A stretch of DNA of 64,000 nucleotides from IMGVR_UViG_3300036770_006893:160358-224357, one strand, 5' to 3'. Counted from the first letter of the stretch, positions 24,513 to 54,851 are shown. Numbers and translations: made by a program. The notes: generated by a model from the sequence alone, not told the origin.

Positions 24513-24516
24513 ACCT

Positions 24517-38588: not shown

Positions 38589-39727
38589 AATTGGTCGCCA
38601 AGTTGAGCAGCAAGGTCTTTGGCAGCACTACTTAGAAAGCGATTGTTGCTGAAATACAACGCTGTGGACGCTTGATTAAGGTACTCCACGACCGTTTTTA
38701 AAAGTTTGGTCTGCTGACCAGTCAGGTTTAAACAACCGTCACCAGATACTCTTCCAGGCACAACAGGATTAGCATCTCCATAAGCCTTGACTTGATCTGT
38801 TGAGTTAACATAAACAGCATCATCAAAATCTGAAGATGTAATAGTCGCATTATAATTCGTATTAGCTCCAAGATGATGAAAAGTATCTATAGAATTCTGA
38901 GTATTTTTCTGACCGCAACTAGGACTAAGTTGTTGCAAAATTTCTTTTGCCACATCTACAGATACAGGTAGACCATTTTCATCAGCCTTCTTATATGCCT
39001 TAGCATAACCCTTATACCATTCATCACTGCATTTAGCAGGATCGGTGACTATGTTGGTGCTTTGACCAGTTAGTGCCGACTGCAAAGCCGCAACATTAAT
39101 TGGTTGACCAGTTGATCCTGGCAGAATACTGGTAAAATAAGGAGCTTTCTTCTCCCAACCCTTACGCCACCAAGTATAAGGAACACGATAAATCTGATTA
39201 GGCTTGATCGCTCGTGGATCGCCACCAAAGTAATTTACCAGTTTCTTTTGTAGACCATTCCAGTAGGTTTTATTCTTACCGATTATTTGGCGACTAGATT
39301 CATCAAAAATCCAGTAGCACTGATAACCATTACGAGTATCAACTACCCAACTAGGCTTAACTGGAAAGTTGTTAATCTTTTCAAGAAATCGCTTCTTGTG
39401 CTGCATTACAACACTAGGCTTAAAATACTTGCCTTCATTGTCTCTACCAGCATCCATATCACAAAAGCAACTAGTAAACTGATTAATCGCATACATTTTG
39501 CGACCACCGTTTACATAGAAATAAACGTCAGAGTCATTACTATTATTGGCATTTATCGCCTCTGTAAGACGATCAGTATGACTCATACTGCTAATCTTCT
39601 TACGAGGATTACCGTTGTAAACAAAAATATGATTTTGCTTAAAAGAATTCAAGAATTTTTCGCTGTTCTTGACCGACGTATTATTGTTCTTATCAAAAGG
39701 ATTAAATCCAAGATTATCACTAAACAT
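38576..39727 (-). CDS. RepB'-like (AEP superfamily) DNA primase domain protein
   Basis: F.D.D, PS.VV.T.NG.Q.YW, GGD.......RVP; start placed at MFSDNL. Confidence 0.7.
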   Translation of the reverse strand: MFSDNLGFNPFDKNNNTSVKNSEKFLNSFKQNHIFVYNGNPRKKISSMSHTDRLTEAINANNSNDSDVYFYVNGGRKMYAINQFTSCFCDMDAGRDNEGKYFKPSVVMQHKKRFLEKINNFPVKPSWVVDTRNGYQCYWIFDESSRQIIGKNKTYWNGLQKKLVNYFGGDPRAIKPNQIYRVPYTWWRKGWEKKAPYFTSILPGSTGQPINVAALQSALTGQSTNIVTDPAKCSDEWYKGYAKAYKKADENGLPVSVDVAKEILQQLSPSCGQKNTQNSIDTFHHLGANTNYNATITSSDFDDAVYVNSTDQVKAYGDANPVVPGRVSGDGCLNLTGQQTKLLKTVVEYLNQASTALYFSNNRFLSSAAKDLAAQLGDQFCIG

Positions 39728-39793
39728 TTCTTTACCTGTTTCTTCTGTGAACCTATATTGGGGCGGCAACCTCTACCACCATTAGCAATATAA

Positions 39794-39880
39794 AATAGCG
39801 GGAGGGAATCGAACCCTCTCAAATAGCGTGTGTATCATTCGATACCAGAGGCTACTATCTTAGTCCCCAGACTCCACTAA
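39794..39880 (-). ncRNA. tRNA-like structured RNA without a canonical anticodon arm
   Basis: T-arm GAGGG-TTCGATT-CCCTC, acceptor-like TAGTGG/CCGCTA, short D-like hairpin, extended central arm. Confidence 0.55.
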
Positions 39881-39890
39881 TCCTTTTTAA

Positions 39891-40751
39891 TCAATAAACG
39901 CTATCGTAGTCATCCTCATCTTCGTAATCATCTTCATCGTCATCAAACTGATCCCAGTAATCGTCGCGGATATCATAATCCTCGTCATCATCATAATCAG
40001 CATACTCATCCTCTGAGAATGTAGCCGAATACAATGGCTTGAGAAGTTCTCCTTGGTATTCTCCAACCACAAGATATTCGCATGTGCGAAGTTTCTCGCA
40101 GTTGCAGTCGCTAGGAACACTCACAACGTCCTTGGGATTAATCTTAACAATGACAATACGATCACCAGCATCAACACTCCCATAACCAGCAACATAATTT
40201 AATGCACCAGCATGAAGCCCATCAGAACAACCGCGACTACGATCATCGTCAACCTTTGCTCTGGTCATCTTACAGATGTTGCCAACGCTATTATCGAATA
40301 CTCCACGATACTTATCCTTGTAATCACTTCTGACTGCCTTATAAGCAAGAAAACAACCGTCCTCAGTAATGGGTAGGTGTTCGTGTTCAAGGAAATCATA
40401 AAGCTCTTTTTGACTCTGCATACTAGGATTATCCATAAGATTATTCAGGAAATTAACAAGAGGCTGAAAAGGCAGACCCTTGCTCATAAATTCCAGAATA
40501 CGCTTACTAATACTGCCATGAACAACCTCGCCCTCATAAAGAACTTGACCGTTCTTAATCTCCACAAGGCCATCACTAAAAGTAGCAACAGCCTTTTGCA
40601 CATCAACAATCTCCAAGAGTTCATCAGCGGTTGCGGTTGGCAACGCCTCAAGAATCATCTTGTAATTAATATGATCCGGCAAAACCTGATAACTCTTGTT
40701 GTTAAGAACAAGGGTAAGATTACCATCAACCCACATAAAAGGAACGCTCAT
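39891..40751 (-). CDS. rIIB: rIIB-like protein
   Basis: F...L..NPS......LY.FL....LPIT.DG.FLAYK.V..DY.D, CS.GLH, VK.NP.DVVSVP.D....K.R.C.Y. Confidence 0.88.
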   Translation of the reverse strand: MSVPFMWVDGNLTLVLNNKSYQVLPDHINYKMILEALPTATADELLEIVDVQKAVATFSDGLVEIKNGQVLYEGEVVHGSISKRILEFMSKGLPFQPLVNFLNNLMDNPSMQSQKELYDFLEHEHLPITEDGCFLAYKAVRSDYKDKYRGVFDNSVGNICKMTRAKVDDDRSRGCSDGLHAGALNYVAGYGSVDAGDRIVIVKINPKDVVSVPSDCNCEKLRTCEYLVVGEYQGELLKPLYSATFSEDEYADYDDDEDYDIRDDYWDQFDDDEDDYEDEDDYDSVY

Positions 40752-40777
40752 TTGTTTTCTCCTGTTTCCTGTGAAAA

Positions 40778-43420
40778 TTAACCAATCATTTGACCAAACT
40801 GAACCTTTAATCTCTCAACATCATCAATAGAGTTAGACCAACTATTGTTATCACGATAGTAGTAACCCCTATTACCGTCATGCTGCTTGAGAGGATTAAT
40901 GTTCTTCAATTCTCTCAGGTTGCCACTGACAGGCGTAACACACATAGTATACTTCAGTATCGGATTGTTGTCAAGTTCCGCTTTAATAATTTTTCTAAGA
41001 GAAGAAATCTTTGGAGCCGTATACTCTTTATCTGACTCGGATTTCTTAAAGACATTCTTATATTGTGAAACCTTGCCACTATCATAAATCTGATCAATAA
41101 CCCGATGAATTTGATTATAGACCACATTAGAATCTTTGATTTTAGCACTGTCCAAGCCGTTGATACCAAAATCACTAAGTAGTTTGGTCATGTGACCATA
41201 GTAATCGTCTTTCTTGAACTTGCTAATATCAAATTCGTTACGATGAATAGTATCGGCAAAGAACTCCAAAATCATCAGACTGTCCAAAGCGGACACAATC
41301 TTCTGATTATTGATAAACTTACTATATTCAAGTCCGAAAATATTAAGCATATGGAATAGGAACTGGCGATCAATGTATCCGTGACCATATCCATGACTCA
41401 TCTTATCGTCTGAATTGAACTCAGCTTTACACTGTTCAACAAGGCTATTAAACTGATAGATATCCTTAAACTTTGTGTCATTGAGTTTCTTTAGACGGGT
41501 CTTGAACCAAGTGTTAAAATCGACAAGGTTGTAACCCTCCTTGACTAAACGATTGACTACACTCTGCTTGATACCATAAATATTTGTGTCATCAAATATC
41601 TTTTGCTTCTCAAGAAAGTCCTTATTCATAGACAAACTACTAATTGATGGATAATCAGTAGTAGCGGCTGCGTATCTAAGAATAGGAATATACACAATTT
41701 GATCCTCATCCTCAAGATCATCGAGCCTACTCTTGCTAAGACTACGCATCAGACTAGCATCATTGTAGTCATAATTAAGAGGCTCTGTATTCTTACGATC
41801 TCCAAAGATCAAGAAAATATCTTGGTCGCTAACGCTACCCTTGCTACCCTGACTCCCTCTTGCTTTAGGGGTGGACTTAATCAGATCACGATAATCTGAC
41901 ACGTTCAGAATATTCTTTTCTCCAACATCTTCAACAAGAGAGGCAAAGTTATTCTGTACATCAGTATGATCATTAGCATTGACCAACAGATAAGCAAAAC
42001 AATCGTTCTGATTGCAATACTTCGTAACAATCTTTTTGGCGGTTTCTGTGGCAGAAATATCGCACCAGAAGAAAACCATATTGCCGGACTTGCGACTACT
42101 ATTCCAGTAAGAATAACCCTTACCAGTAAGAGTATCGTGATGGATTCGGTCTGTCATATAAACTAAGCGACGAGAGCGATATCCAGATGTTCTGTAATTG
42201 AACACATATAGATTCTCATCCTTCTTAAGTTTATACTCAATATCTTGACCACTAGTAATATTATGGTCATTACCAGATGAATCAGTCCAACTAGCACCAA
42301 CGCCCCAACCACCAGCAAGATCATTCATCTGATAATAAGTGGTGATTGCCTCAATCTTAGTCTTAGCAGTAGCGATCTTGTCACTAAAATTCTTCTTGAG
42401 TTCCAAGAAAATATCCTGGGTCTTTTCTCGTAGAGTCTTTACAACACTCTTAGTGTATTGCAAACCTTCTCGACTAACATCCATCTCAAGTTCACCAATA
42501 TTGAACTCAAGCTCAAGGTAAAGACCCTGACTAATAATTTCTCCGACAAAAGCCTTCCATGAAGCGATATCTGCCTTATTGAAAGCCCTATTCCACTTTG
42601 CAATATGGTCTGGAGTTTCAGCCTTTTCCTCACCAATAAGATGAGAAACCTCAACTGGGTACGCAATGTTACCCATCAGAGCAATAACACCACTCTGAAT
42701 ACGATGATAATTGTTAGGAAACTTATTACTATCATTATTGAGTCGGCAAACACGCCAACCATCACCATCAATAACAATATTTCGCTGGCTGTATTCCTTG
42801 TTAAAATCCCAAGTAACACCGCCAGAAATAATAGGCTTCATCTTAAAGTAATGAAAAACCCTGATAGCTTTCTGACTAAATTCTTGGAAATCATATTGCT
42901 TAACAGCAAAACTAATCTCAAGACCATTAGGCTCAGATGTTTCGCAAGAATGAATAAGATTCAGATTAGGAACACCAGCATCGTCAATAGCCGCGATATA
43001 TGTGTATTGAGTGCCGTTGAAATAAGACGTTGTGGTAAAGCTCTTAGTATAAGCAAACGGACTCTTAGAACCTAGACCAAGGCAACCAACGAAATCATTA
43101 CTATCATTCTTATTAGAAGCACCATAAGTTGTGTACAGATGCTCCATATCCTTCTGACTAAGACCAGTGCCGTAATCACGCACACTGAAATTGGGATCAG
43201 CAGCGGTTGGCAACTTTACAAGAAAAGGATTCTTATTACCAGCACTAATGTGAGAGTCATAAGCATTAGTGGCAAGTTCACGAATAACTGCCATAACCTT
43301 GTCGGAATAAAGAGAGTCCGACAGAATCTTAAACATTTTGCTAGTTTGAGCAATCGTAAACTGATTAGATGCACTAATACCAGCACTATGAACTTCAACC
43401 GTTCGATCCGCAAGTTTCAT
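40778..43420 (-). CDS. rIIA: rIIA-like protein (N-terminal GHKL ATPase)
   Basis: LS..LY.DK..AVIREL.TNA.DSH, D.G.G, G.LGLGSKSPFAY, SRE.L.Y; directly upstream of rIIB. Confidence 0.88.
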   Translation of the reverse strand: MKLADRTVEVHSAGISASNQFTIAQTSKMFKILSDSLYSDKVMAVIRELATNAYDSHISAGNKNPFLVKLPTAADPNFSVRDYGTGLSQKDMEHLYTTYGASNKNDSNDFVGCLGLGSKSPFAYTKSFTTTSYFNGTQYTYIAAIDDAGVPNLNLIHSCETSEPNGLEISFAVKQYDFQEFSQKAIRVFHYFKMKPIISGGVTWDFNKEYSQRNIVIDGDGWRVCRLNNDSNKFPNNYHRIQSGVIALMGNIAYPVEVSHLIGEEKAETPDHIAKWNRAFNKADIASWKAFVGEIISQGLYLELEFNIGELEMDVSREGLQYTKSVVKTLREKTQDIFLELKKNFSDKIATAKTKIEAITTYYQMNDLAGGWGVGASWTDSSGNDHNITSGQDIEYKLKKDENLYVFNYRTSGYRSRRLVYMTDRIHHDTLTGKGYSYWNSSRKSGNMVFFWCDISATETAKKIVTKYCNQNDCFAYLLVNANDHTDVQNNFASLVEDVGEKNILNVSDYRDLIKSTPKARGSQGSKGSVSDQDIFLIFGDRKNTEPLNYDYNDASLMRSLSKSRLDDLEDEDQIVYIPILRYAAATTDYPSISSLSMNKDFLEKQKIFDDTNIYGIKQSVVNRLVKEGYNLVDFNTWFKTRLKKLNDTKFKDIYQFNSLVEQCKAEFNSDDKMSHGYGHGYIDRQFLFHMLNIFGLEYSKFINNQKIVSALDSLMILEFFADTIHRNEFDISKFKKDDYYGHMTKLLSDFGINGLDSAKIKDSNVVYNQIHRVIDQIYDSGKVSQYKNVFKKSESDKEYTAPKISSLRKIIKAELDNNPILKYTMCVTPVSGNLRELKNINPLKQHDGNRGYYYRDNNSWSNSIDDVERLKVQFGQMIG

Positions 43421-43451
43421 TTTGTTTCTCCAAGTGTCCTGTGATGCTCCA

Positions 43452-43479
43452 AGTATACATCGTCAATCCGCGTTGTCAA
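43452..43479 (-). promoter_or_regulatory. Early promoter for rIIA
   Basis: TTGACA-N16-TATACT. Confidence 0.75.
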
Positions 43480-43804
43480 CATTACGCTTTCTGGATTGCA
43501 AGATTTCTTTCGCTTTCATGGTTACGAAAGTTCCAGCAAATGCACCTAAAAATAGCGGAATAATATATAGCATATTTTTGCTAAAGCTTACTACCCCAAA
43601 TGCGGATAGTGAAGTTATCATACCAGCCATAAAAGACGACATTAAATTTTGTCTAGATTCTATGCAAAGAATATAATATGCATAAAACATATCTAGTATA
43701 AAATATGTTATAAATATCAGTAATGCTGAATTCGCATCAAATTGATTCGTCTGTATCATTTTCCCAAAAATTATCGTCTTTTGATGCCCAATTTTCTTCT
43801 TCAT
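43463..43804 (-). CDS. Small multi-TM membrane protein
   Basis: Three hydrophobic segments, GAF.GT motif. Confidence 0.55.
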   Translation of the reverse strand: MKKKIGHQKTIIFGKMIQTNQFDANSALLIFITYFILDMFYAYYILCIESRQNLMSSFMAGMITSLSAFGVVSFSKNMLYIIPLFLGAFAGTFVTMKAKEILQSRKRNVDNAD

Positions 43805-44063
43805 AATCTTCTACATCCATATCATCTTCTTCTGCCAATAGAATGGTGAAGTTATTCAAAATTTCTAAAACAATATCTACTTTTGTCATAATTTCAGAAA
43901 CCTCTTTTTTAATAGAGCATATCTCTTTTTTAAGGCTAGATGTTTCTTTTCCAAGATCTGTTACTTGTTTATTTAACATTAAGTCATTTTTATCAGACTC
44001 CCGAGATAGTTGATCCAATTTTTTGTATAAGTCATCTATATTTTTAGACATTGTTTTCTCCAT
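43737..44063 (-). CDS. Coiled-coil hypothetical protein
   Basis: Heptad pattern, acidic tail. Confidence 0.5.
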   Translation of the reverse strand: MEKTMSKNIDDLYKKLDQLSRESDKNDLMLNKQVTDLGKETSSLKKEICSIKKEVSEIMTKVDIVLEILNNFTILLAEEDDMDVEDYEEENWASKDDNFWENDTDESI

Positions 44064-44100
44064 CGGGATTTATAGACGCAAAATAAATATACACCATCTT

Positions 44101-44634
44101 CTATGCGAAACACTTACACTTGTATCGTCTGCAATATGAGCATTTTGGGCCTGGGTCTGGATTTCCCCAAGCATTAGATATTCCATTAAAACTTTCTTTT
44201 CCAGTATCTATGCAGACAACTTTCTTTTTTCGGCCTCTTTTTACTGTTCCAACATTATACCAATGACAGTCCCAAAATTTTAAGCCGGTTTTGAATTCTA
44301 TATCATTGACTAAATTTTGAATGTCCCGCATACTAATTTCCGTAGCAGGATCATATAGCGTGGCTAATTCGGTAACGAACCCCCAGTTGCTAGGATCGTC
44401 AAAATATATGTCGTTATGATAAGCAAATTTTAACTTACATATTTCTGTGTATATTTTTGGAGCAAGATCGAATCGTGATAATTTTTTTTGTATTGAGTGT
44501 GCTGCTATGGCCTTTTTTTTGTTTTTGAATTCTTTGAATACTAGATTGGATTGATTTTTAATTGGATAAACCTGACAAGATCCTCCTTCATCACTCCAGT
44601 CTGAACAGTCTATTAGATACTGATTATTAATCAT
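44101..44634 (-). CDS. Protein-kinase-like fold enzyme
   Basis: EGGSCQVY (Gly-loop), VFK, LAPK.Y, G.VTE, D.H..N, CID.G. Confidence 0.7.
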   Translation of the reverse strand: MINNQYLIDCSDWSDEGGSCQVYPIKNQSNLVFKEFKNKKKAIAAHSIQKKLSRFDLAPKIYTEICKLKFAYHNDIYFDDPSNWGFVTELATLYDPATEISMRDIQNLVNDIEFKTGLKFWDCHWYNVGTVKRGRKKKVVCIDTGKESFNGISNAWGNPDPGPKCSYCRRYKCKCFA

Positions 44635-44956
44635 TAGATCTATCTACTATTTTGTTACCCATTATTTCTTCAGAAATATTGATAGCTTCTTTCAAATCTT
44701 TAGTGTCTGTAATTTTAAGCGGACCTTTCGGAATGTCTATCCAATAAGATGCATAGACCCCGTAGAAAACATCTCCCAAAGAATGATCGTGCATCAAAAA
44801 ATCTACAGCATCATGGAAAATGTCTAAATACCAATCGCCGTGTTCGTCTTGAACTTCTTTTATCGTATCGACTAAAATAAAGCGAAAATTTGGATGCTTA
44901 AAGTCCGGGTCACTATGCACAATACCTCGATAAAATCTATTTGGTAAACTTACCAT
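44627..44956 (-). CDS. Hypothetical protein
   Basis: ORF in operon. Confidence 0.5.
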   Translation of the reverse strand: MVSLPNRFYRGIVHSDPDFKHPNFRFILVDTIKEVQDEHGDWYLDIFHDAVDFLMHDHSLGDVFYGVYASYWIDIPKGPLKITDTKDLKEAINISEEIMGNKIVDRSND

Positions 44957-45311
44957 ATTGGTTATATCCTTTCCAGTCTCCAGCTAAAAATTCTTTTTTG
45001 TTAGAGTAAAGAGGAACCACTTTTTCATCTGGGTTGTATGGATTGTCAATAAGTCTTAGATCATATAGGTCTTGTCTATCGTTGACTAGACCATAAGCAA
45101 CAGGATGCTTGAATATATCTATGATCTTAGTATATTTTTGCTTTAGGTCGCTTAGTTCTTTCTCACAGCTTAACCATCTTTGAGAATCTGCGCTATCTGC
45201 TCTAAGTTTTTTTAACTCATCTTTAGCATTATTTACTACAAAACGATCAGCACCACTGGCCCAAGCAAATTCAATAATAAAGTCGATAGGGTTAGAGTGT
45301 TCGTTCATCAA
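44937..45311 (-). CDS. Hypothetical protein
   Basis: ORF in operon. Confidence 0.5.
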   Translation of the reverse strand: MMNEHSNPIDFIIEFAWASGADRFVVNNAKDELKKLRADSADSQRWLSCEKELSDLKQKYTKIIDIFKHPVAYGLVNDRQDLYDLRLIDNPYNPDEKVVPLYSNKKEFLAGDWKGYNQYGKFTK

Positions 45312-45526
45312 ATGAATCCTATTCTAGTTTTTTCTGTTGTAACAACAGCCTCTATATCAGAAGAGTTAAAGATTTCGGTACAATATGATCGACCGCTCCA
45401 CCACCCACACTTATAAGTGATTGCATGATTAGGACCAATACTAACACAAATGATAGTCCCGTAAACATCATCTGTCAACTTAACCCTGGTTCCAATATTG
45501 TAAAATTCTAGAGAGTTTTTGCTCAT
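45308..45526 (-). CDS. Small hypothetical protein (start MSKNSLEF)
   Basis: AAGGA RBS before ATG 45526; the longer ORF call overlaps tRNA-Leu. Confidence 0.55.
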   Translation of the reverse strand: MSKNSLEFYNIGTRVKLTDDVYGTIICVSIGPNHAITYKCGWWSGRSYCTEIFNSSDIEAVVTTEKTRIGFI

Positions 45527-45565
45527 TTGTTTTCCTTGTTCTTTAAAAAGGTTTTGGTGTAATAA

Positions 45566-45648
45566 TCTCACGGGAGGGACTCGAACCCTCAAGACTAAAA
45601 GTCGAGGCATTTTAAGTGCCTTGCGTATACCAGTTTCGCCACCGTGAG
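45566..45648 (-). tRNA. tRNA-Leu (anticodon UAA), CCA not encoded
   Basis: Acceptor CTCACGG/CCGTGAG+A, D-arm GCG-AAACTGGTATA-CGC, anticodon AGGCA-CTTAAAA-TGCCT, long V-arm, T-arm GAGGG-TTCGAGT-CCCTC. Confidence 0.95.
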
Positions 45649-45655
45649 GTATGAT

Positions 45656-46087
45656 ATGAATCCTAAACGAAAGTGTTCCTGTTGTCAAGTGTACAAAGAC
45701 GAATCATTTTTTGCATTTAAAAATAGAAAATTAGGTAGATTACAAACTAGATGTAAAAAGTGTCAATCAAAATATCATAAACAACATTATAAATCAAACA
45801 AAGAAACATATTGCGAAAGAGCCAGAGCCAATAATCCAAGATATAAACAAAGAAATCAACAATTTATTAATGAATATAAAGCCAAAAAGGGTTGTAAATT
45901 CTGTCAAGAAAATACTCCTGTATGTTTGGATTTTCATCATGTTGACCCAAACATTAAAGATTGGAATATATCAGTAATGTCTAGGAGTGCTAGTTCAATA
46001 GCAACAATTAAAAATGAAATTGATAAGTGCATAGTAATCTGTTCTAATTGTCATAGAAAACTTCATGCTGGAATAATAAAAGAATAA
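45656..46087 (+). CDS. Free-standing HNH endonuclease
   Basis: C..C Zn fingers; GC..C......LDFHH.DP...E..KC...C.NCHR..H. Confidence 0.85.
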   Translation: MNPKRKCSCCQVYKDESFFAFKNRKLGRLQTRCKKCQSKYHKQHYKSNKETYCERARANNPRYKQRNQQFINEYKAKKGCKFCQENTPVCLDFHHVDPNIKDWNISVMSRSASSIATIKNEIDKCIVICSNCHRKLHAGIIKE

Positions 46088-46177
46088 AAAAAGCAATCGA
46101 CTACAACAATCAAAAGTTTGAGGTTGATTATTTGTGTGCCTCTCCCATTATAACCGTTGTAGCCGACTACCTTTTTT
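46086..46177 (-). ncRNA. Long G-U-rich stem-loop (3' UTR element / sRNA / terminator) with an antisense loop
   Basis: 21 contiguous pairs (7 G-U) between 46151-46171 and 46092-46112, flanked by A/U runs. Confidence 0.75.
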
Positions 46178-46190
46178 ATAGTATTGACTC

Positions 46191-46472
46191 TCAGCCGTTG
46201 TTATGAGCCTTGAGGCGACGAACAAACTCAGCCATAGCCTCAACATTATCTACTGTCTTGGTTGGCTTCGCACGTTCCATAGAAGGAAGTTCGATACCCT
46301 TCTGGGCCAGAGCGGCCTTGGTGCGAGCATAACGAGCCATAGTACTGGCAACCTTTTGACCAGTCTTACTAGCGATCTCAGCATAAGTCTTAGACGAGTA
46401 AACCGCTTCAAGAAATGCCTCATCGCTGCAACGAACACGGGTCTGCTTCTCAACATTACTAATTTCTGCCAT
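46191..46472 (-). CDS. Small HTH-like DNA-binding protein
   Basis: MAEISN... after TTTGGAGG RBS; TYAEIASKTGQKVASTMAR HTH-like segment. Confidence 0.6.
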   Translation of the reverse strand: MAEISNVEKQTRVRCSDEAFLEAVYSSKTYAEIASKTGQKVASTMARYARTKAALAQKGIELPSMERAKPTKTVDNVEAMAEFVRRLKAHNNG

Positions 46473-46549
46473 GATAATCAACCTCCAAATTAAGTTACCT
46501 TACTTCACGGTTTCGGCCACACGACCTCAAACACCCGTGTTGTATTAGC

Positions 46550-46577
46550 ATTATATCCTATGTATCGGCGTTGTCAA
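46550..46577 (-). promoter_or_regulatory. Early promoter with GCCGATA spacer motif
   Basis: TTGACA-ACGCCGATACATAGGA-TATAAT. Confidence 0.8.
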
Positions 46578-46596
46578 TACCCAAACTTGAAAAATT

Positions 46597-46779
46597 CTAC
46601 TCAGACGGCAAAATAATTGCGAGTAATATATATATCCACAATAATAGACTGCCGGTTGCAAAAAATCCTAGTACAAATAAAATTCTAACTAAAGAAACTT
46701 CGATACCCATATATTCAGAAATGCCTCCGCAAACACCAAAAATATTTTTATGTTTTTGACTTTTAGTTAATCTTTTCAT
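46597..46779 (-). CDS. pspC: PspC-domain membrane protein
   Basis: MKRL.KS...K.I.GVCGGI.EY.GI...LVRI.......Y......P. Confidence 0.85.
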   Translation of the reverse strand: MKRLTKSQKHKNIFGVCGGISEYMGIEVSLVRILFVLGFFATGSLLLWIYILLAIILPSE

Positions 46780-46927
46780 TTCTAGAACCTTCTTTTTCTA
46801 TTAAGGCTTCTTGTTTTATTTGATCTTCTACATCTTTAATAATTTTTTGCAGATATTTTATATAAGAAATCATTTGTTCATCTGTTGCATCATCTGGCAG
46901 TGGTATTATTTCCATATTATGTACGTT

Positions 46928-47725
46928 CTAAAAATAGTAATTATTCATTAGGGCCATTAATCTATCTACACCAATCGATTGACTTACGCAGCTTTTTAAC
47001 ATCCATAAATGGATAATATTGCTTTGTTTTAAAACACTAAAAACGTCCCAAAAATTTTTACAGTGGAAGGTATCTATTAATGTTGTTGGTGGTATGGGAA
47101 TACTATCAATCAACACCATCTGTTCTATAAAAACACTTTTAACCCATGAGGAGTCTGGCGTATTAATATGATTGACCAAGCCACTATCAAATGTATCTAA
47201 GTTATTTATTGTTGTTGATATAGTCCTTTTAATTGCGTTATTAATAATTTGTGTATCGCTGCCACCAAACACAGCACAATTATAACTGTCTAGTTCAGAT
47301 GTTTGAGTGTTATATATTTTACTATATAAGGCGTGGTCAACCTTAAGTATATTTTTGATCCATGGTTCTATATGTAGTGTTATAAGGCCAGTATTGATTT
47401 TATCAGCTAATATATTTTCTATTAAAAATAGATCTATGTCAATATGAACATATGGTCTTTCATGCTTACAGCACGAAACCAATTTAGTACCAGACCAGAA
47501 GTTGTTTTTAATAATATCTTTGTATTCATCTTCATCTATACAGATTATATCGTCGTAAGGGTTTTCTTTAAAAGAATCTTTTAGGTCTGGAGATGTATAT
47601 AGAACAACAGTATATTTATGCTTTTTAAGGAATTTACAAGAAACTAAAGATTGACTAGCAACAAGGCTAATATTTGATCTTATATTATTGCTTAAATTGC
47701 TAAAATAGCTCTGTATAATTTCCAT
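46928..47725 (-). CDS. DUF6734-like (putative glycosyltransferase) protein
   Basis: LYT, FW...KL......PYVHID.D.F, N...FGG.D, F.EQ, H. Confidence 0.6.
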   Translation of the reverse strand: MEIIQSYFSNLSNNIRSNISLVASQSLVSCKFLKKHKYTVVLYTSPDLKDSFKENPYDDIICIDEDEYKDIIKNNFWSGTKLVSCCKHERPYVHIDIDLFLIENILADKINTGLITLHIEPWIKNILKVDHALYSKIYNTQTSELDSYNCAVFGGSDTQIINNAIKRTISTTINNLDTFDSGLVNHINTPDSSWVKSVFIEQMVLIDSIPIPPTTLIDTFHCKNFWDVFSVLKQSNIIHLWMLKSCVSQSIGVDRLMALMNNYYF

Positions 47726-47726
47726 T

Positions 47727-48068
47727 TTATTTAATTAATTTTGTTATGCAAATATTTTCAAACGTATTATTGCCTTTATCTAAAATAGCCTTTGTAGCCA
47801 GATCTTTAGAGATAGATGCTAGGTTTTTTTCATACACCATAATTTCCTTGAGTGTATTTATGCAATAACTAACAGAGCTTGTAGTAAAATTACTGTAGTG
47901 TTGGTATGTAGATATATTTGCTTCTATTTTTTCTATAATATTATTAACAATCAAAATTATCTCTGGACTCTCTTTGTATTTAACAGATAGTCTTTGTGAG
48001 ATCCATCTTAAATAATTAAGATCGTTTGCGTCTAGCATATTTATTTTTCTTTTTTTCTTTTTTACCAA
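47727..48068 (-). CDS. Hypothetical protein
   Basis: ORF. Confidence 0.45.
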   Translation of the reverse strand: MVKKKKRKINMLDANDLNYLRWISQRLSVKYKESPEIILIVNNIIEKIEANISTYQHYSNFTTSSVSYCINTLKEIMVYEKNLASISKDLATKAILDKGNNTFENICITKLIK

Positions 48069-48155
48069 AAATGTTTTCGTAATTTTTACTCCACGTATTA
48101 TAGTCTACACTTTTTGGCCTTCTCTTATCGCCTTTTCCATTTTGGCTCATATTCA

Positions 48156-48869
48156 TCACTCCAGTACAAATGACCAATAACGAGAATCGTCTTTCTTTTG
48201 AAGATTATCCCAATACAAGCACCGAGCAATATATGGTGGAATTTTATATTTTCCACAATTAATAACCCAATGACGTTCCATTTTCTTGTAAGAATCGGTT
48301 CCGATCTTGCTCTTATTATATTTCAAATGTTCCATATCGTAAAGGCGAAGTTGATGAATATCTCCACACAATACTCTTGCTTCATTAGGATGAATCATTT
48401 CCAGAGCAAAACTAACTTTAGCCAGACCAATACCATTGATCTTATTAACAATAGCATCACGCTTTTTAACGTGGCCTTTTTTAGTTGTAAAATAAAAGTC
48501 TTTAGGGTTTGTCCAAAATTTAGTAGCAAAATCCCAAATATACTTGGTGCGATTATTGTGTAGACCAACACCACTCTTATGCAGTTTTTCTCTCAGAATA
48601 TTTTCGTTATCAATCCATTCGTCAAAATTCTTAATGGCATTATAGCCCTTAACATTGCCTTGCCAAGTAGTATGTACGCTTGTGTATGCAAAAAGATATC
48701 TACGAAAAATATCTTCCACATTCTGTGGACGCACACTCTCCCAATATTCCTTGTATGAAACTACCTTGTCTCTAGGAAAAGTAGCAAAGAAAATATCAGC
48801 CTTGGTCTTATCAAGAGTAGTATTCTGAACCGGAATTACAGTATTCTCAACAATCATGGTTTTCTCCAA
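48156..48869 (-). CDS. HhH-family DNA glycosylase/AP lyase (Ogg-like)
   Basis: R..IV..I.GIG..K.SF.L......D.H helix-hairpin-helix with the Lys/Asp pair. Confidence 0.7.
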   Translation of the reverse strand: MEKTMIVENTVIPVQNTTLDKTKADIFFATFPRDKVVSYKEYWESVRPQNVEDIFRRYLFAYTSVHTTWQGNVKGYNAIKNFDEWIDNENILREKLHKSGVGLHNNRTKYIWDFATKFWTNPKDFYFTTKKGHVKKRDAIVNKINGIGLAKVSFALEMIHPNEARVLCGDIHQLRLYDMEHLKYNKSKIGTDSYKKMERHWVINCGKYKIPPYIARCLYWDNLQKKDDSRYWSFVLE

Positions 48870-48882
48870 TGGTTATGCTACG

Positions 48883-48911
48883 ATTCTACACTACGAGTAT
48901 CGACTTGTCAA
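48883..48911 (-). promoter_or_regulatory. Early promoter
   Basis: TTGACA-AGTCGATACTCGTAGTG-TAGAAT. Confidence 0.75.
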
Positions 48912-48922
48912 GACTCGTTTCT

Positions 48923-50239
48923 TTAGACGGTTCTCGCAGACCCATGTAGAATTTTAAACGTAGGAAATCGCAAACTGATACCACCATCTTGGTTTTTAGT
49001 TTCCTCAAAATACTGCACAGTTATAATCTGTCCAAGAATCTTATTAGGGTTCCGATAAAATTCCTGACGTTGTTCTATAGTGAAACCGCTACCAACTCTC
49101 ACAAGATGATCCTTATGCTTAATAGTAACGCAACTCAACATAGTTTCTTCACACTCAGCACCATTCTTTACATAACGAAATGGCCCCATTTCTGTGTCGA
49201 TTACTTCATACTCGTCATCAAAAAACTTCTTAACTTTCAACAGGTCTTTGCTACGCTTGCCTTTATATGGCTCGTCTGCTCGTAGCATTACTCCTTCCCA
49301 ACCATAATCAGCCGCTTCTTTGACCCATTCTTGAAAATGCTCGTCATTATGAATCAATTCTTGTTCAAGCAGAGTAAGGCACGGACATTCATTTTTGGTC
49401 ATAATCTCTGTAAGATTTGCTAACCGAATAGAATATGGACGATTCTTTTCACCCTTCTTGCTATAAAACTCGTCGTGAGAGATCATATCAAAAATTTTGA
49501 ATGACGGATTAGGAATAGTATGATCCTTCTTTTTAAGTTGTTTCATAATCCCTTGGAAATCCTCATTACCATCATCATCTACAAGACACAGTTCACCATC
49601 AAATATTACATCAGTAACCCCCAAAGCCTTAATCCCACGGCTAACAACACCAAGAGTTTCAAAACTCTTTCCTGTGCGGGAATAAAAAGTAGAGTCCCCA
49701 TTACCATCAACAATACAAATACATCTAGCACCATCAATTTTTCTGCTAACATACCAATTATCCTTCCATTCTACAAGTTTAGGCTCATACTTATCTGCCA
49801 GAGCAACACTAAACTCTGGAATATGGTCAGGAATAGCCTTGTTGATAATCTTGTCACCAGCACGGGTTTTCAAGTCCTTATCAATAATGCAATAAATAAG
49901 TTCCTCAATATTGTCTTTATTTGACTGACTATCAATAAAAGTATGGACTGCTCCAATAGCATCGTGACCAGTAATCTTTCGACTCTTTAGGGCATCAAGT
50001 AGATCGAAGAAATTCTTATAGGATTTTCCTCTCAAAGAATTCTTCTTTTTCAGATTGTCGCTAGTAACATTATACTGCCACAAAGGGTGATAGGTGTAAA
50101 GAAGAATTTTTTTAGCAAAATTTGCAGCCTCAGAATTATGATTACAATAATCTTCAATAATACCTTGCTTATCAATAGTGCTGCTAGTAGCCCTAAGATC
50201 ACGAACCATACCCCAAACATAATTAAAATCGTGAATCAT
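48923..50239 (-). CDS. lig: ATP-dependent DNA ligase
   Basis: KIDG.R (motif I), FDGE, IFD, EGVMLR, Y.GKRS..LLK.K, VGSGF, SLRFP; start placed at MIHDF after GGAGA. Confidence 0.93.
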   Translation of the reverse strand: MIHDFNYVWGMVRDLRATSSTIDKQGIIEDYCNHNSEAANFAKKILLYTYHPLWQYNVTSDNLKKKNSLRGKSYKNFFDLLDALKSRKITGHDAIGAVHTFIDSQSNKDNIEELIYCIIDKDLKTRAGDKIINKAIPDHIPEFSVALADKYEPKLVEWKDNWYVSRKIDGARCICIVDGNGDSTFYSRTGKSFETLGVVSRGIKALGVTDVIFDGELCLVDDDGNEDFQGIMKQLKKKDHTIPNPSFKIFDMISHDEFYSKKGEKNRPYSIRLANLTEIMTKNECPCLTLLEQELIHNDEHFQEWVKEAADYGWEGVMLRADEPYKGKRSKDLLKVKKFFDDEYEVIDTEMGPFRYVKNGAECEETMLSCVTIKHKDHLVRVGSGFTIEQRQEFYRNPNKILGQIITVQYFEETKNQDGGISLRFPTFKILHGSARTV

Positions 50240-50271
50240 CCAAAGTTTCTCCGGTTTCCTGTGTTCAAGCC

Positions 50272-50300
50272 AGTATATCATATACTATCGGCGTTGTCAA
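50272..50300 (-). promoter_or_regulatory. Early promoter
   Basis: TTGACA-ACGCCGATAGTATATGA-TATACT. Confidence 0.8.
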
Positions 50301-50314
50301 GCACATTTCTTTAG

Positions 50315-50707
50315 TTAGTCTTGATTAAATTTTAATTCAACCAGCTTTTGTGCTGAATCAACCAACCTATCCCAATTTTTGTTCACATATTCTGGTGGTC
50401 CTCCAATTTTTGCTACAATTTCTGGAGCTGATTCTAGGGGAACCATTTCTATAGCATCCCAAGGACAAACCTTTAAATCATATGGATTAGATTTTTTTTG
50501 AGGTATCCGGACACAAACTTCACACCCAACACATTTATCAAGATCTATTTCGCACCAACTTTGTAAGTTTCCTAGATTATCATTTTGTTGTATTTTGATT
50601 ATGCAATCCACGGGACAAACTTCCAAACAAGCCCCACAGCCTGTACAATTATCGGCATTTATAATTGCTAATTCTTTTGGTAGTTTTTTTCTTGAAGATT
50701 GTTTCAT
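50315..50707 (-). CDS. 2x[4Fe-4S] ferredoxin
   Basis: CTGCGAC..VCP and CVGCEVC...CPW. Confidence 0.88.
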   Translation of the reverse strand: MKQSSRKKLPKELAIINADNCTGCGACLEVCPVDCIIKIQQNDNLGNLQSWCEIDLDKCVGCEVCVRIPQKKSNPYDLKVCPWDAIEMVPLESAPEIVAKIGGPPEYVNKNWDRLVDSAQKLVELKFNQD

Positions 50708-50869
50708 TTATATTGATTGCTATTTTTAAGGGCTTCTAAAACCATTTCGACATCTTCTTTACTATATGGGGTTTCTATACCTAATTGTTTATGCATACCC
50801 ATTTGTACATATAATATATTTAAAGCATCTATAACAATTTGTAAATCGTTTGGTTCTAGATAATAGAAG

Positions 50870-51082
50870 TTACTTTTTAGTTTCACGACTAAACCTCTTG
50901 CTTAATTTTTTAACTAAATCACTGCCTGCTGTTGGGAAAAAACATGGTAATATAGAATGTATTATTAATAGTAATCCGGCCAATAAACAACAGATACCAT
51001 AAAATAAAGCAAAGCCCAAATGCTCTATATAAGTCATATTATTTTCTTTAAGATGATCTTTCCATTTTTGTGTTATTCTCAT
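50870..51082 (-). CDS. DUF6356-like small membrane protein
   Basis: HL....MTY.EH..FA...IH...P..F....SD. Confidence 0.6.
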   Translation of the reverse strand: MRITQKWKDHLKENNMTYIEHLGFALFYGICCLLAGLLLIIHSILPCFFPTAGSDLVKKLSKRFSRETKK

Positions 51083-51096
51083 AGACGTTTTACTGC

Positions 51097-51855
51097 CTAC
51101 TTTTTAAGTTCGGTTTTGGATTCTTTTATCCATTCTAAAAATTTAGAAACTCTGGTATGCCCAGATTCTTCTCCATACTTTGACATTGGAGATTTACCAA
51201 TAGTCATTACACACGAATTTATTCCTGCTAGTTTACCTTCTATAAAAAGACCCCCACCACTATCTCCACTTCCTATCATATACTCTAATATTGTATGATC
51301 TTTTGCTCCATATCGCGATGGAGAACATAGCAGCATATCTTTTTCTATTCCATCGATCACATTGGATCCTGCTCTTAATTTATTATCTGATTTATATATA
51401 CCGGTATTGAAATTACCAGTTAGTCCCCAGCCAGCAATTGAGGCTACTTTACCAACTTCGTTTTCATCTTCATATAATGGAGGAAAATGCTCTTGATCAA
51501 AACCGCTTTCAGAATATCCTAATGCTATATCAGCCACTCCAAATCGGCCATCAAAATCTTTGTGTACAATTATATTGTCTACAATAAACTGTTTGTCTCC
51601 TATTTTTACATAACAAGTTTTGTATCCTTTAACAACGTGACCGGCAGTTAGTACAAAATGTTTTTCAATAATAACTCCAGAAGCACAAAATTTTGTATCA
51701 TCTTGGTATGTGCCACAAAGCCTAACAACACAATAAAATTTGCTACCAAAATCTAAATATTTTTGATCTGGTATATTTGGATCTATAGTTCCGCTATAAG
51801 ATAGAGAGCATAGTCCTAAAAGAGAAAACAAAAAAAGCTTTTTAAGTATAAACAT
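51097..51855 (-). CDS. Secreted trypsin-like (S1) serine protease
   Basis: Signal peptide; LTAGH, DIAL, GDSGG. Confidence 0.88.
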   Translation of the reverse strand: MFILKKLFLFSLLGLCSLSYSGTIDPNIPDQKYLDFGSKFYCVVRLCGTYQDDTKFCASGVIIEKHFVLTAGHVVKGYKTCYVKIGDKQFIVDNIIVHKDFDGRFGVADIALGYSESGFDQEHFPPLYEDENEVGKVASIAGWGLTGNFNTGIYKSDNKLRAGSNVIDGIEKDMLLCSPSRYGAKDHTILEYMIGSGDSGGGLFIEGKLAGINSCVMTIGKSPMSKYGEESGHTRVSKFLEWIKESKTELKK

Positions 51856-51892
51856 GATAAGCCCTCCTTTAAAAGCGGCTTAGTATAATACA

Positions 51893-52240
51893 CTATTTTT
51901 GTCTATTTTTAGACATAATTAAATAGTTAGCAGCTTTAATTATGCCGTCTAGATTATCTCCCAACTTTCCCAATCCCGTATTACAAGGCTCACAGAGCCA
52001 ACCCCTAAAACTATCGTCACTATGATCGTGATCTAAACACCATTTAAGAGGAATTTTTCCACAACATTCACAAACTTCTGGTTTTGGCGGAGCTTCTTTA
52101 TGTAGCTGATTTCTTACTTTGCTGTGTTTTTTAACGCAACTTCTACATCTGCTATCCAAATTATCTTTGTACATACTGTGCTTGGGAAAACTTTTATGGT
52201 TTTTTCGTTTGCCGCAGTAAGTACAAATTTTTCTAGGCAT
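51893..52240 (-). CDS. Endonuclease VII-like (His-Me finger) endonuclease
   Basis: C..C...LDHDH....RG.LC..CN..LG...D. Confidence 0.85.
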   Translation of the reverse strand: MPRKICTYCGKRKNHKSFPKHSMYKDNLDSRCRSCVKKHSKVRNQLHKEAPPKPEVCECCGKIPLKWCLDHDHSDDSFRGWLCEPCNTGLGKLGDNLDGIIKAANYLIMSKNRQK

Positions 52241-52242
52241 AC

Positions 52243-52595
52243 TGGACGAGAGGGGAGTCGAACCCCTGTCCTATCATATTTCTAATTACATCTTCTACAA
52301 GTTTATTCTGTTCATAAGTTTTGAGAAAGATTAAAGAACAAACAACATTCATCTTTCCGTACCAACTAGTCTCAGGCTAGAACCCGTTGGCTATTCTAGC
52401 AGCCGAAGGATTTTACGACAATCTTTTGAACGCTACCTTCATCGCTTTCTAAGATTGTTGCTACCTTTTATTAAGCAGCAAGGGCTAACTGAGTATTGCC
52501 AGTTACAGCATTTGGTAGATTTTTAAAGTGGCCTTTCCACCAACCACTACTTGCCAATATAATCTTCTTTATGTAGTCGAAACCTTTACTCGCCC
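52243..52595 (-). ncRNA. ssrA: tmRNA, tag (A)GNTQLALAA*
   Basis: Acceptor GGGCGAG/CTCGTCC+A with G3-U; T-arm AGGGG-TTCGACT-CCCCT; pk1 AGTGGTT/GGCCACT plus GGTGGA/TCTACC; TAACT precedes the resume codon; tag ORF 52471-52500; 353 nt. Confidence 0.93.
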
Positions 52596-52868
52596 TAATT
52601 ATTATACACAAAATCTTTGTTTTTCAAATGTTCCAAAGCCTCTAACTTCAGATACAAATATTCAAAAAATACTTTGTACGTTGCTTTTTCTTGTCTCAAT
52701 AATTTTATCTCTTCGTATTGAATAAGATTAAAACCTAAAGACATAGATAGAATACCAATTATTATTACATAATATGGCATATGTTTTGAACGATTTGTCA
52801 TGAATTTTGTTGCCTGTTAATCGAAAATGGTGTATGATATTATCTAGTTATAGAAAGGAGATTCGATT

Positions 52869-53360
52869 ATGAATCAATGCGTCAACTGTTCCAAAGAAAC
52901 AAGTAATCCAAGGTTTTGTTCAAGATCATGTGGTGTGTCATACAATAATCGAATAAAACCTAAAAGAATTAAAAGGATGAGAACTTGTAAATTTTGTAAA
53001 AATCAATTTCATTCTCTTCATAGTTATAATCAAAAATATTGTAATAAACAATGCTTACAAAATCATAGAGAATACAATATTCAAACTAATGGTTTTGGTG
53101 AAGGTCATTACCACAATAATTCTATAAGAAAATATCTAGTTAAAAAGCATGGTAATAATTGTATGATTTGCGGACAGTCAGGAAATGATTGGAATGGTAA
53201 ACCTATAACTCTTATTGTGGATCATATTGATGGAAAATCTAATAATAATAAACTAGATAATCTTCGTATTGTTTGTCCTAATTGCGACTGTCAATTACCA
53301 ACCTATAAAGCAAAAAATAAAGGAAATAGTTCTCGTAAATATTACATAGTCCAAAAATAA
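52869..53360 (+). CDS. Free-standing HNH endonuclease
   Basis: FCSRSC/YCNKQC Zn repeats; C..CG...W.GK...L.VDHIDG...NN...NLR..CPNC. Confidence 0.88.
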   Translation: MNQCVNCSKETSNPRFCSRSCGVSYNNRIKPKRIKRMRTCKFCKNQFHSLHSYNQKYCNKQCLQNHREYNIQTNGFGEGHYHNNSIRKYLVKKHGNNCMICGQSGNDWNGKPITLIVDHIDGKSNNNKLDNLRIVCPNCDCQLPTYKAKNKGNSSRKYYIVQK

Positions 53361-53440
53361 TACTCCTGCTTGGAATCGAACCAAGTCCCCTTTCGGATTA
53401 CCTTATAAGAGTAATTGCCGGGAACCACCGGCACAGGAGC
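53361..53440 (-). tRNA. tRNA-Ile (anticodon UAU) with extended variable arm, CCA not encoded
   Basis: Acceptor GCTCCTG/CAGGAGT+A, D-arm CCGG-TGGTTC-CCGG, anticodon TTACT-CTTATAA-GGTAA, V-region TCCGAAAGGGGA, T-arm CTTGG-TTCGATT-CCAAG. Confidence 0.85.
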
Positions 53441-53449
53441 GTATGTTGT

Positions 53450-53478
53450 ATTATACACTATCGACCGATCTCTGTCAA
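53450..53478 (-). promoter_or_regulatory. Early promoter for tRNA-Ile
   Basis: TTGACA-GAGATCGGTCGATAGTG-TATAAT. Confidence 0.75.
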
Positions 53479-54024
53479 CTCTCCAGTTTCGTTTTTCAAT
53501 TTTTCCACAAAGTTTCTATAAATTCCCATAACAATACCACTAGTTGTTCCCACGTTGAGAGAACGAACGCTACCATAATTAGGAATAGTAAGGATAATAT
53601 CACACTTATCCAAAATGAAATCTGATAGTCCTTTATTTTCTTCTCCAAATAAAAATATAGGTTGAGTAGTATTGTAGTATTGATAATCAAAGAGATTAAC
53701 GGTTTTGTGACTATATTCGGGAACGTTATTTTCAATAGCAATAACAGTCCTACCAGGGCATTGTGAAATAAAAGACTGTTCATCTTTATGGTGATACATT
53801 GGTGTGTAGTGATGGGTTCCTACGCTGCCTCTTTTATCCCATTTCTTTTTACCGATATAATGGACACTACTAAACCCAAAAAAGTTTGCGTTACGAACCA
53901 GTGTACTAAGATTAAAATCTCCGCTAATATTAATCATGGCAACACTCGCTGGTATGCTGTTACTAATACAGTATTCAGCAATATCAGGAATAGCATATTC
54001 TTTTAGGCTATCAATCACGTTCAT
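53458..54024 (-). CDS. SpoU/TrmH-family RNA 2'-O-methyltransferase
   Basis: N..TL.R.A..FG, FGEE..GL, IP..GSVRSLNV. Confidence 0.85.
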   Translation of the reverse strand: MNVIDSLKEYAIPDIAEYCISNSIPASVAMINISGDFNLSTLVRNANFFGFSSVHYIGKKKWDKRGSVGTHHYTPMYHHKDEQSFISQCPGRTVIAIENNVPEYSHKTVNLFDYQYYNTTQPIFLFGEENKGLSDFILDKCDIILTIPNYGSVRSLNVGTTSGIVMGIYRNFVEKLKNETGELTEIGR

Positions 54025-54572: not shown

Positions 54573-54851
54573 TTATTTAATAAACTTAGATACACCCTGA
54601 CCGGAATCTTCTGATATTTTATCAAGAATTCGGCTAATTGTATATTGCATATTTACTTCTCCTCTATTTAACCATCGGCTATTACTATCTAGTGCCGTTA
54701 TAATTTGAGGAATCCAGTGCTGATACGCTACATCAAATTCTTCTGGAAAATAAGTCTTCAATATTCTCTGTATATGAAATATAGAACTGTCTATTTGGTC
54801 TCTATAATCCATAAGTAGGTTCAATTGATCTTTTTGATCCTGGCTTAACAT
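54573..54851 (-). CDS. Hypothetical protein
   Basis: ORF in operon. Confidence 0.5.
   Translation of the reverse strand: MLSQDQKDQLNLLMDYRDQIDSSIFHIQRILKTYFPEEFDVAYQHWIPQIITALDSNSRWLNRGEVNMQYTISRILDKISEDSGQGVSKFIK

Follow-up and report, generated by a model that had tools for sequence, protein, structure and literature searches.

The window analyzed here comprises the last 64 kb (bases 160358 to 224357) of the 224,357-bp IMG/VR record IMGVR_UViG_3300036770_006893, an uncultured phage whose record has a GC content of 35.8% and is rated complete. Its genes, among them the rII genes that open the segment from 39891 to 53478, are written in two different synonymous codon dialects. Genes located directly behind a strong early-type promoter are poor in adenine at the third codon position (A3), and this A3-poor dialect includes rIIA, rIIB, a DNA ligase, a glycosylase-like gene, a SpoU-family methylase, and a DUF932 gene. 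The bulk dialect (A3 of about 0.35, with ATA at about 50% of Ile codons, AGA at about 60% of Arg, and AAA at about 78% of Lys) is shared by replication genes, structural genes, and most small open reading frames (ORFs). The first-pass annotation of the segment had seen a split between early and late genes, but the limit does not run there. In the window, the six promoter-proximal genes use ATA for 4% of Ile and TTA for 5% of Leu, while the other 41 ORFs of the early region reach 44% and 36%, close to the 55% and 38% of the non-early part. The dividing line is whether a gene stands directly behind a strong promoter, not whether it belongs to the early or the late region.

The rII locus was recognized by adjacent rIIA and rIIB homologs on the same strand, separated by a gap of 26 nucleotides (nt), the former being 35 to 37% identical to annotated rIIA genes over N-terminal residues 1 to 347 only. 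ATA makes up 46% of Ile codons genome-wide, TTA 34% of Leu, and AGA 57% of Arg. Against these shares, the whole rIIA gene has ATA at 2 of 63 Ile codons (binomial p = 3e-14), TTA at 3 of 64 Leu (p = 3e-8), and AGA at 6 of 33 Arg (p = 9e-6), and rIIB has 0/12, 1/26, and 2/9, respectively. The first 70 codons of both genes are free of ATA and TTA, just as had been read by eye. The genes of the left part of the window, cited in the same annotation as rich in both codons, indeed are: the contrast gene starting at 24628 uses ATA for 34 of 41 Ile codons, and an 1,878-amino-acid (aa) fiber-like gene, with a TGGTGTA late-type motif at 7326, uses ATA for 66 of 141 Ile and TTA for 52 of 117 Leu. A GIY-YIG gene that had been counted with them could not be recovered, as there was no match to Pfam PF01541 in the whole genome and the called proteins contain no GIY...YIG motif. 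The depleted class extends past the left edge of the segment, since the 383-aa gene downstream of rIIB is A3-poor as well.

Both promoter types postulated by the first-pass annotation, the TTGACA early promoters and the GGTGTA late-type motif, are present. The early family is conserved and consists of TTGACA(A/G), a CGATA spacer element, and a TATAAT-like -10 box; about 26 copies carry the spacer element, every one on the minus strand. Sigma-70-like matches number 110 on this strand versus about 48 in shuffled sequences, and they cluster at 0 to 43 kb and 200 to 220 kb of the genome. The spacer element (CCGATA or CGATA) comes just after the -35 box, often with a run of T before it (for example, at window positions 46577-46550, 50300-50272, 55343-55316, and 56023-55996); it exceeds the plain sigma-70 consensus and may be a phage-specific regulatory site or part of a mobile promoter cassette. 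The second motif, (T/A)GGTGTA(T/A), lies 28 to 73 nt upstream of structural genes and also precedes plus-strand ORFs in the early region. The phage sigma factor, of the sigma-70/ECF family, may be a candidate reader of TGGTGTA; its own gene is not depleted (ATA 7/19, AGA 5/8).

For the genome-wide comparison, 312 genes were called with a simple codon-model ORF picker (92% of the genome covered; the calls are approximate), the larger ones were annotated via PHROGs, Pfam, and NCBIfam, and temporal classes were drawn from promoter motifs. We distinguished 29 genes with their own promoter (at least 11 of 12 consensus positions), 118 early-region genes without one, a class that spurious small ORFs, if called, would pull toward bulk DNA, and 144 non-early genes. 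In these three classes ATA accounts for 8%, 34%, and 51% of Ile codons, AGA for 20%, 52%, and 62% of Arg, TTA for 11%, 31%, and 37% of Leu, AAA for 39%, 73%, and 78% of Lys, and CAA for 45%, 78%, and 73% of Gln. ATA, TTA, and AGA, the codons to which attention had been drawn, are thus among the most depleted codons of the promoter-proximal genes. The response is graded. A3 rises from 0.152 behind 12/12 promoters to 0.178 behind 11/12, 0.290 behind 10/12, and 0.311 with none, and it also rises with rank behind a strong promoter, from 0.175 in the first gene to 0.241 in the second, 0.294 in the third, and 0.32 to 0.35 from the fifth onward.

The bias is essentially a loss of A at third positions: A3 is halved in promoter-proximal genes compared to non-early genes (0.175 versus 0.352), with compensating gains in T3 (0.463 versus 0.388) and G3 (0.204 versus 0.116). 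The depletion spans all A-ending (NNA) codons except CGA and goes beyond those matched by phage tRNAs; the favored codons are ATT, CTT, CGT, GGT, GCT, GTT, and AAG. Codon positions 1 and 2 have no consistent parallel shift, and A at position 2 is in fact higher in the depleted set. As C3 is nearly constant (0.158 versus 0.144), a GC-rich host, which had been suggested for this phage, is not indicated.

A proposed control, in which the depletion had to exceed what GC content at third positions (GC3) explains, was run on the share (ATA+TTA+AGA)/(Ile+Leu+Arg) in genes of at least 100 aa, and the depletion held. Early-region genes (n = 49) have a median share of 0.28, compared to 0.49 for all others (n = 129; Mann-Whitney p = 4e-10), while GC3 outside the Ile, Leu, and Arg families is the same (0.287 and 0.280). 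The gap remains in a GC3-matched subset (p = 2e-7) and when GC3 and A3 enter a logistic model as covariates (odds ratio 0.54, with a gene-level bootstrap interval that excludes 1), and ATA/(ATA+ATT) is independent of GC3, at 0.22 to 0.47 in early-region bins and 0.5 to 0.7 elsewhere. GC3 was therefore rejected as a cause. So was strand, as the replication block lies on the strand of the early genes and yet uses the bulk dialect; replication and structural genes are indistinguishable in their codon usage.

The split is conserved within this group of phages. We found 46 related IMG/VR loci, with rIIA 53 to 100% identical, and pooled the same share over orthologs of less than 95% identity (up to 39 loci). 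The depleted genes remain depleted (rIIB 0.045 in 38 orthologs, rIIA 0.081 in 39, the 93-aa gene at 46191 0.016 in 30, the glycosylase-like gene 0.080, and the ligase 0.109), their neighbors range from 0.33 to 0.58, and each gene retains its codon class across the pooled orthologs. Even rIIA orthologs below 60% amino acid identity have only 41 of these codons in 476. Compared to a 69%-identical rIIA, the codon is unchanged at 62% of conserved residues, where independent draws would give 48%, which indicates that turnover at synonymous sites is largely complete. The same split is seen in G001, a complete 138-kb relative that has terminal repeats (TerL 78% identical), with ATA at 12% versus 37%, AAA at 48% versus 80%, and TTA at 15% versus 43%.

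A pattern in which A goes down and G and T go up on the coding strand, fading with promoter strength and distance, could also arise with no translational selection at all, by transcription-associated mutation of the non-template strand or by the arrival of foreign promoter-plus-gene cassettes; the promoter-rich genome region from 26 to 43 kb, a mosaic of many small ORFs each with its own promoter, would suit the latter. We consider this very unlikely. The codons lost most strongly are those that can be replaced synonymously only by transversions or in several steps (ATA has a log2 odds ratio of -3.5, and AGA is replaced by CGT, not AGG), the NNA/NNG shift differs widely among codon families, positions 1 and 2 do not move in parallel, and the likely capsid gene described below is biased without such a promoter. 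Concerning cassettes, rIIA, rIIB, and the ligase are core phage genes in which C3 is not raised, and a bias kept in orthologs down to 53% identity excludes a recent import. Recent import from the host or a GC-rich source was accordingly rejected on the flat C3, the unshifted positions 1 and 2, the core nature of the genes, and their conservation in distant orthologs.

The genome codes for ten tRNAs, eight of them with uridine at the wobble position (U34: Gly-UCC, Lys-UUU, Gln-UUG, Thr-UGU, Arg-UCU, Glu-UUC, Leu-UAA, and Ile-UAU) plus Ser-ACU and Asn-GUU, together with a transfer-messenger RNA (tmRNA). ARAGORN reported nine tRNAs and the tmRNA, and Rfam reported eight tRNAs in the first 43 kb plus tRNA-Leu and the tmRNA in the window; tRNA-Lys was detected by Rfam but escaped ARAGORN under default settings, appearing there only once the threshold was relaxed. 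No further tRNA was found in the middle 119 kb. The two tRNAs previously listed, Ile(UAU) and Leu(UAA), do exist in the window, but the idea that the phage has only two was an artefact of the window, as the genome has eight more. The U34 tRNAs cover all six split-box NNA codons (ATA, AGA, AAA, TTA, CAA, and GAA) plus GGA and ACA, and the complete relative has the same set minus Gly, with the tmRNA present. All the tRNA genes are in the early region and on the early strand, and a sigma-70-type match lies directly upstream of tRNA-Ile (12/12, confirming the early-type promoter ascribed to it) and of tRNA-Leu, tRNA-Lys, and the tmRNA (10/12 each), while tRNA-Thr and tRNA-Gln have an 11/12 promoter 82 to 156 nt upstream. 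With this location and these promoter matches, the tRNA genes may be expressed early.

Some of these RNAs have unusual shapes. The tRNA-Ile, described earlier as canonical, has a regular ARAGORN cloverleaf, but with its 80 nt, a long variable region (about 10 to 12 nt), and a G1-U72 pair, it gave no match to Rfam RF00005 even at E ≤ 1 and does not conform to a canonical class I cloverleaf. Its anticodon loop, CTTATAA, is invariant in the relatives, where the tRNA is 75 to 76 nt long, with a different body in the same place, and the promoter is kept upstream in 4 of 7. The tRNA-Leu has 83 to 86 nt and a long variable arm here and in some relatives, and 73 to 75 nt at the same position in many others. 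Two class-II-shaped tRNAs with unusual anticodons lie at genome positions 24514-24602 and 24670-24756: Ser(ACU), whose wobble base is A, and Asn(GUU), whose variable arm is long; both are confirmed by Rfam (53 and 60 bits) and kept in the 138-kb relative. The tmRNA is kept in relatives with the tags GNNQLALAA and GETQLALAA and could rescue ribosomes stalled on scarce codons. The SpoU-family gene, directly upstream of tRNA-Ile, may modify phage tRNAs; its subfamily could not be assigned, since TrmH, TrmL, TrmJ, and RlmB all scored under the NCBIfam cutoff. Finally, between the rIIB stop codon and the next gene (window 39788-39882, minus strand) there is a conserved tRNA-like RNA, not called a tRNA by Rfam or default ARAGORN, with an acceptor-like stem, a 4-bp D hairpin, and a perfect T arm, in which a 6-bp helix enclosing a hairpin replaces the anticodon arm. 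Compensatory changes affect 9 of its 27 predicted pairs among 10 aligned relatives, and it keeps 74 to 97% nucleotide identity even where the rIIA protein is 57% identical.

We think that the split probably reflects translational selection on the first or most strongly expressed genes toward the tRNA pool of the host, with the phage tRNAs serving the rest of the genome. Selection would be strongest on genes expressed first or most heavily, and the favored codons would be those that the host pool reads well, T-ending or, in split boxes, G-ending. The remaining genome would stay at an A/T-rich equilibrium, which it could afford thanks to phage U34 tRNAs that are expressed early and raise the supply for its A-ending codons. 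For this to operate, the promoters would have to be immediate-early and strong, the host poor in NNA-reading tRNAs, and the phage tRNAs charged and used. The correspondence between codons and tRNAs is partly as expected: the five most depleted NNA codons in promoter-proximal genes (ATA, AGA, AAA, TTA, and CAA) are all cognate to phage tRNAs, and depletion is stronger for cognate than for non-cognate NNA codons (p = 0.04 here by an exact Mann-Whitney test, and p = 0.01 in the complete relative), although the test loses significance when AAA is counted as non-cognate (p = 0.13 to 0.23).

Several points weigh against translational selection of this kind. Both the timing and the strength of expression are read from promoter motifs alone, and the codons that the host would prefer are read only from the depleted genes themselves. 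Transcription-associated mutation would also be expected to give the graded loss of A, and the rise in G and T, on the coding strand near strong promoters. The tRNA-Ile(UAU) also departs from the usual structure. Within four-fold boxes there is no extra depletion of the cognate codons, GGA (-1.28) and ACA (-1.23), compared to the non-cognate ones (-0.9 to -1.5), so the contrast between cognate and non-cognate codons is confounded with that between split and four-fold boxes.

The gene that is most informative about the late phase is a 336-aa gene located after the portal, which is most likely the major capsid protein; its look-alikes in a protein-atlas search, with scores of 0.97 to 0.99, are named major capsid or Phage_capsid_4. 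It has no early-type promoter and yet is biased, with ATA at 0 of 15 Ile codons (binomial p = 7e-5), TTA at 7/34, AGA at 9/22, GGA at 5/27, and an A3 of 0.26. An 84%-identical ortholog in the complete relative has 1/15, 4/35, 3/22, and 0/28, respectively. As the capsid is the gene product needed in the largest amount, its avoidance of ATA, TTA, AGA, and GGA suggests that these codons stay costly late in infection, at a time at which the phage tRNAs should already be available, and are not released.

This result bears directly on the temporal gate of the first-pass annotation, in which middle and late genes would be untranslatable until phage tRNAs accumulate, so that tRNA supply would time the infection program; in a possible variant, the NNA-rich sigma factor gene would be the gating node. 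The tRNAs do lie behind early-type promoters, and the bulk genes, including that of the sigma factor, are rich in the cognate codons that the promoter-proximal genes avoid. However, a putative late gene avoids these codons in two phages, the late dialect is already found in most early-region ORFs, some of them no more than two or three genes behind an early promoter, and non-cognate NNA codons are depleted too. The capsid counts argue against the notion that late genes simply need the phage tRNAs, and together with the late-like usage of most early-region ORFs they leave a strict gate not supported; we regard a temporal gate as quite unlikely.

Another explanation looks at the loss of host tRNAs. 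If host U34 tRNAs were cut by anticodon nucleases or lost during degradation of host nucleic acids, phage tRNAs would replace them later, and the first-expressed genes would avoid codons dependent on the tRNAs being lost. The predominance of U34 among the phage tRNAs speaks for it, and the odd bodies or anticodons of Ser-ACU, Asn-GUU (long arm), and the 80-nt Ile would fit. tRNA-Lys is a known defense target, and phage tRNAs neutralize tRNA-cutting defenses, as described for PARIS and the T5 tRNA-Lys (PMC11464382) and for retron evasion (PMC11555353). Our phage resembles these cases in its tRNA-Lys(UUU) and other U34 tRNAs, some oddly structured, but those papers are not about a codon usage split. 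In addition, a dependence of late translation on phage tRNAs after host tRNA loss has been described (Yang et al. 2021, as summarized in PMC11025619; see also PMC12482277). Host tRNA degradation is part of that model in its summarized form, and the capsid's avoidance of cognate codons falls outside it. Neither this late avoidance nor the equal depletion of non-cognate four-fold NNA codons is predicted by tRNA replacement, which we consider unlikely as the main cause. It makes the same predictions for the sequence as translational selection toward the host pool, so sequence alone cannot separate the two.

A broader and equally improbable proposal is that the whole clade runs a graded translational schedule written in third-position A. 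The first genes, behind strong promoters, would be readable by a naive host, and the rest, the phage sigma factor included, would depend on an early-expressed translation module that times the program or buffers the loss of host tRNAs. This module may comprise the split-box U34 tRNAs, Ser(ACU), Asn(GUU), Ile(UAU), the tmRNA, the SpoU-type 2'-O-methylase, and the tRNA-like RNA after rIIB.

The pattern as such is already known from T4, and the present phage is a very clean and conserved case of it. Codon usage classes of T4 were reportedly tied to expression time by Cowe and Sharp in 1991 (J Mol Evol 33:13) and by Kunisawa in 1992 (J Theor Biol 159:287). T4 encodes eight tRNA genes. Links between phage tRNAs, codon usage, and expression time have been discussed since T4, and in model phages the signal is usually modest. 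Both T4 and the phage studied here are large, AT-rich, and lytic, with rIIA and rIIB, tRNAs among the early genes, and codon usage that differs between expression classes (putative ones in our phage), and their tRNA sets overlap in Ile, Leu, Arg, Gly, Gln, and Thr, all NNA-reading. However, there is no close kinship (rIIA is 37% identical, over the N-terminal part only, and the genome layout is different), this phage adds Lys, Glu, Asn, and Ser tRNAs and a tmRNA, and its special class consists of strong-promoter genes and the capsid instead of late genes, with a very large effect.

Synonymous codon usage differs between temporal gene groups across phages (Mioduser, Goz, and Tuller 2017; PMC5683454), including Shigella phage Sf14 (PMC12482277). 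In these studies the host was known and the temporal classes had been measured or curated, in contrast to the promoter-motif classes here, while the split described here resolves to single genes and operon rank. T4-like cyanophages, in turn, are AT-rich phages with tRNAs in GC-richer hosts (Limor-Waisberg et al. 2011; PMC3152331). They share with our phage the presence of tRNAs for their own frequent codons, but the depleted genes here have not moved toward C-ending codons.

With a contrast of about six-fold for ATA, resolved to single promoters and operon rank and outliving synonymous turnover in dozens of relatives, this clade is a good natural system in which to weigh adaptation to the host pool against protection from tRNA loss and against timing. 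As a practical rule, A3-poor genes behind TTGACA...CGATA...TATAAT would mark the first and most strongly expressed genes of these phages, and their preferences (ATT, CTT, CGT, GGT, and AAG) would be usable as a fingerprint for host prediction. The coordinates of the features discussed are collected in Table 1.

Table 1. Location of genes, promoters, and RNAs (w, window coordinates; g, coordinates of the complete record). Fractions of 12 given with promoters are matched consensus positions; the other fractions give ATA, TTA, and AGA among Ile, Leu, and Arg codons.
Feature	Position	Strand	Evidence or remarks
rIIA	w 40778..43420	-	tblastn to rIIA genes of cultured phages
rIIB	w 39891..40751	-	PHROG 609, E = 2e-72
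Early promoter of rIIA	w 43452..43479	-	TTGACA-16-TATACT, 11/12
Early-type promoter in rIIA 3' end	w 40946..40974	-	195 nt upstream of rIIB, 11/12, CCGATA spacer element
383-aa gene downstream of rIIB, A3-poor	w 38576..39727	-	A3 0.18; 9/51
93-aa gene	w 46191..46472	-	behind 12/12 promoter 46577-46550; 0/14
Ogg/HhH glycosylase-like gene	w 48156..48857	-	behind promoter 48911-48883; 4/43
ATP-dependent DNA ligase	w 48923..50239	-	behind promoter 50300-50272; PHROG 114, E = 4e-86; 9/87
SpoU-family RNA 2'-O-methyltransferase, depleted class	w 53458..54024	-	Pfam PF00588, E = 4e-23; 5/36
144-aa gene	w 54851..55285	-	behind promoter 55343-55316; 4/19
tRNA-Leu(UAA)	w 45566..45648	-	ARAGORN; Rfam tRNA 53.5 bits; in 26 related loci
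Promoter-like match at tRNA-Leu	w 45660..45688	-	TTGACA-17-TAGGAT, 10/12, ends 12 nt ahead of the tRNA
tRNA-Ile(UAU), 80 nt	w 53361..53440	-	ARAGORN alone; position kept in 7 relatives
Perfect promoter match at tRNA-Ile	w 53450..53478	-	TTGACA-17-TATAAT, 12/12, ends 10 nt ahead of the tRNA
tmRNA, tag GNTQLALAA	w 52240..52595	-	ARAGORN; Rfam RF00023 120.5 bits, full length
Sigma-70/ECF-family sigma factor	w 15242..15826	-	PHROG 351; TIGR02937 54.9 bits, above cutoff
Contrast gene, non-depleted	w 24628..26274	+	
Fiber-like contrast gene	w 1647..7283	-	
336-aa gene after portal, likely major capsid	g 54855-55865		protein-atlas look-alikes only
About 110 small ORFs and eight tRNAs	g 0.1-42.6 kb	-	
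Structural block	g 43-122.6 kb	+	terminase, portal, fibers, giant proteins
Replication and nucleotide metabolism block	g 122.6-184.9 kb	-	followed by fiber-like genes, head protease, sigma factor
Short glycosyltransferase block	g 185-190.8 kb	+	
Block with the rII genes	g 190.7-224 kb	-	clamp loader, rIIB, rIIA, ligase, thymidylate synthase, small ORFs

The DNA of this phage occurs in metagenome runs from subsurface and soil that belong to a single study and, as weak traces, in aquatic and freshwater samples; a sequencing-run search found no RNA runs that contain it. No close cultured relative emerged when 6 kb were compared by megablast with 50,697 phage records, and protein matches to cultured phages are distant (25 to 37% identity for rIIA, TerL, and DNA polymerase, with TerL about 25% identical to Bacillus phage terminases), so that neither annotation transfer nor host inference is possible from them. 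Most structural proteins have no PHROGs match.

The 93-aa protein of the depleted class is about 91% identical in 30 relatives; its match to sigma-70 region 4 is weak and does not reach the cutoff (E = 8e-4), and it would be a candidate early transcription regulator. Four plus-strand ORFs stand amid the minus-strand early genes (window 45656-46087 and 52869-53360; genome 18402-18719 and 28201-28779); all have a TGGTGTA motif upstream and the bulk codon dialect, and one codes for an HNH endonuclease. They resemble insertions of the homing endonuclease type, expressed late and adjoining tRNA genes. The DNA polymerase is coded in two ORFs of 623 and 536 aa, both assigned to PHROG 405 (genome 131494-135836, minus strand), with a 229-aa ORF annotated as an exonuclease subunit and a 59-aa ORF between the two halves.

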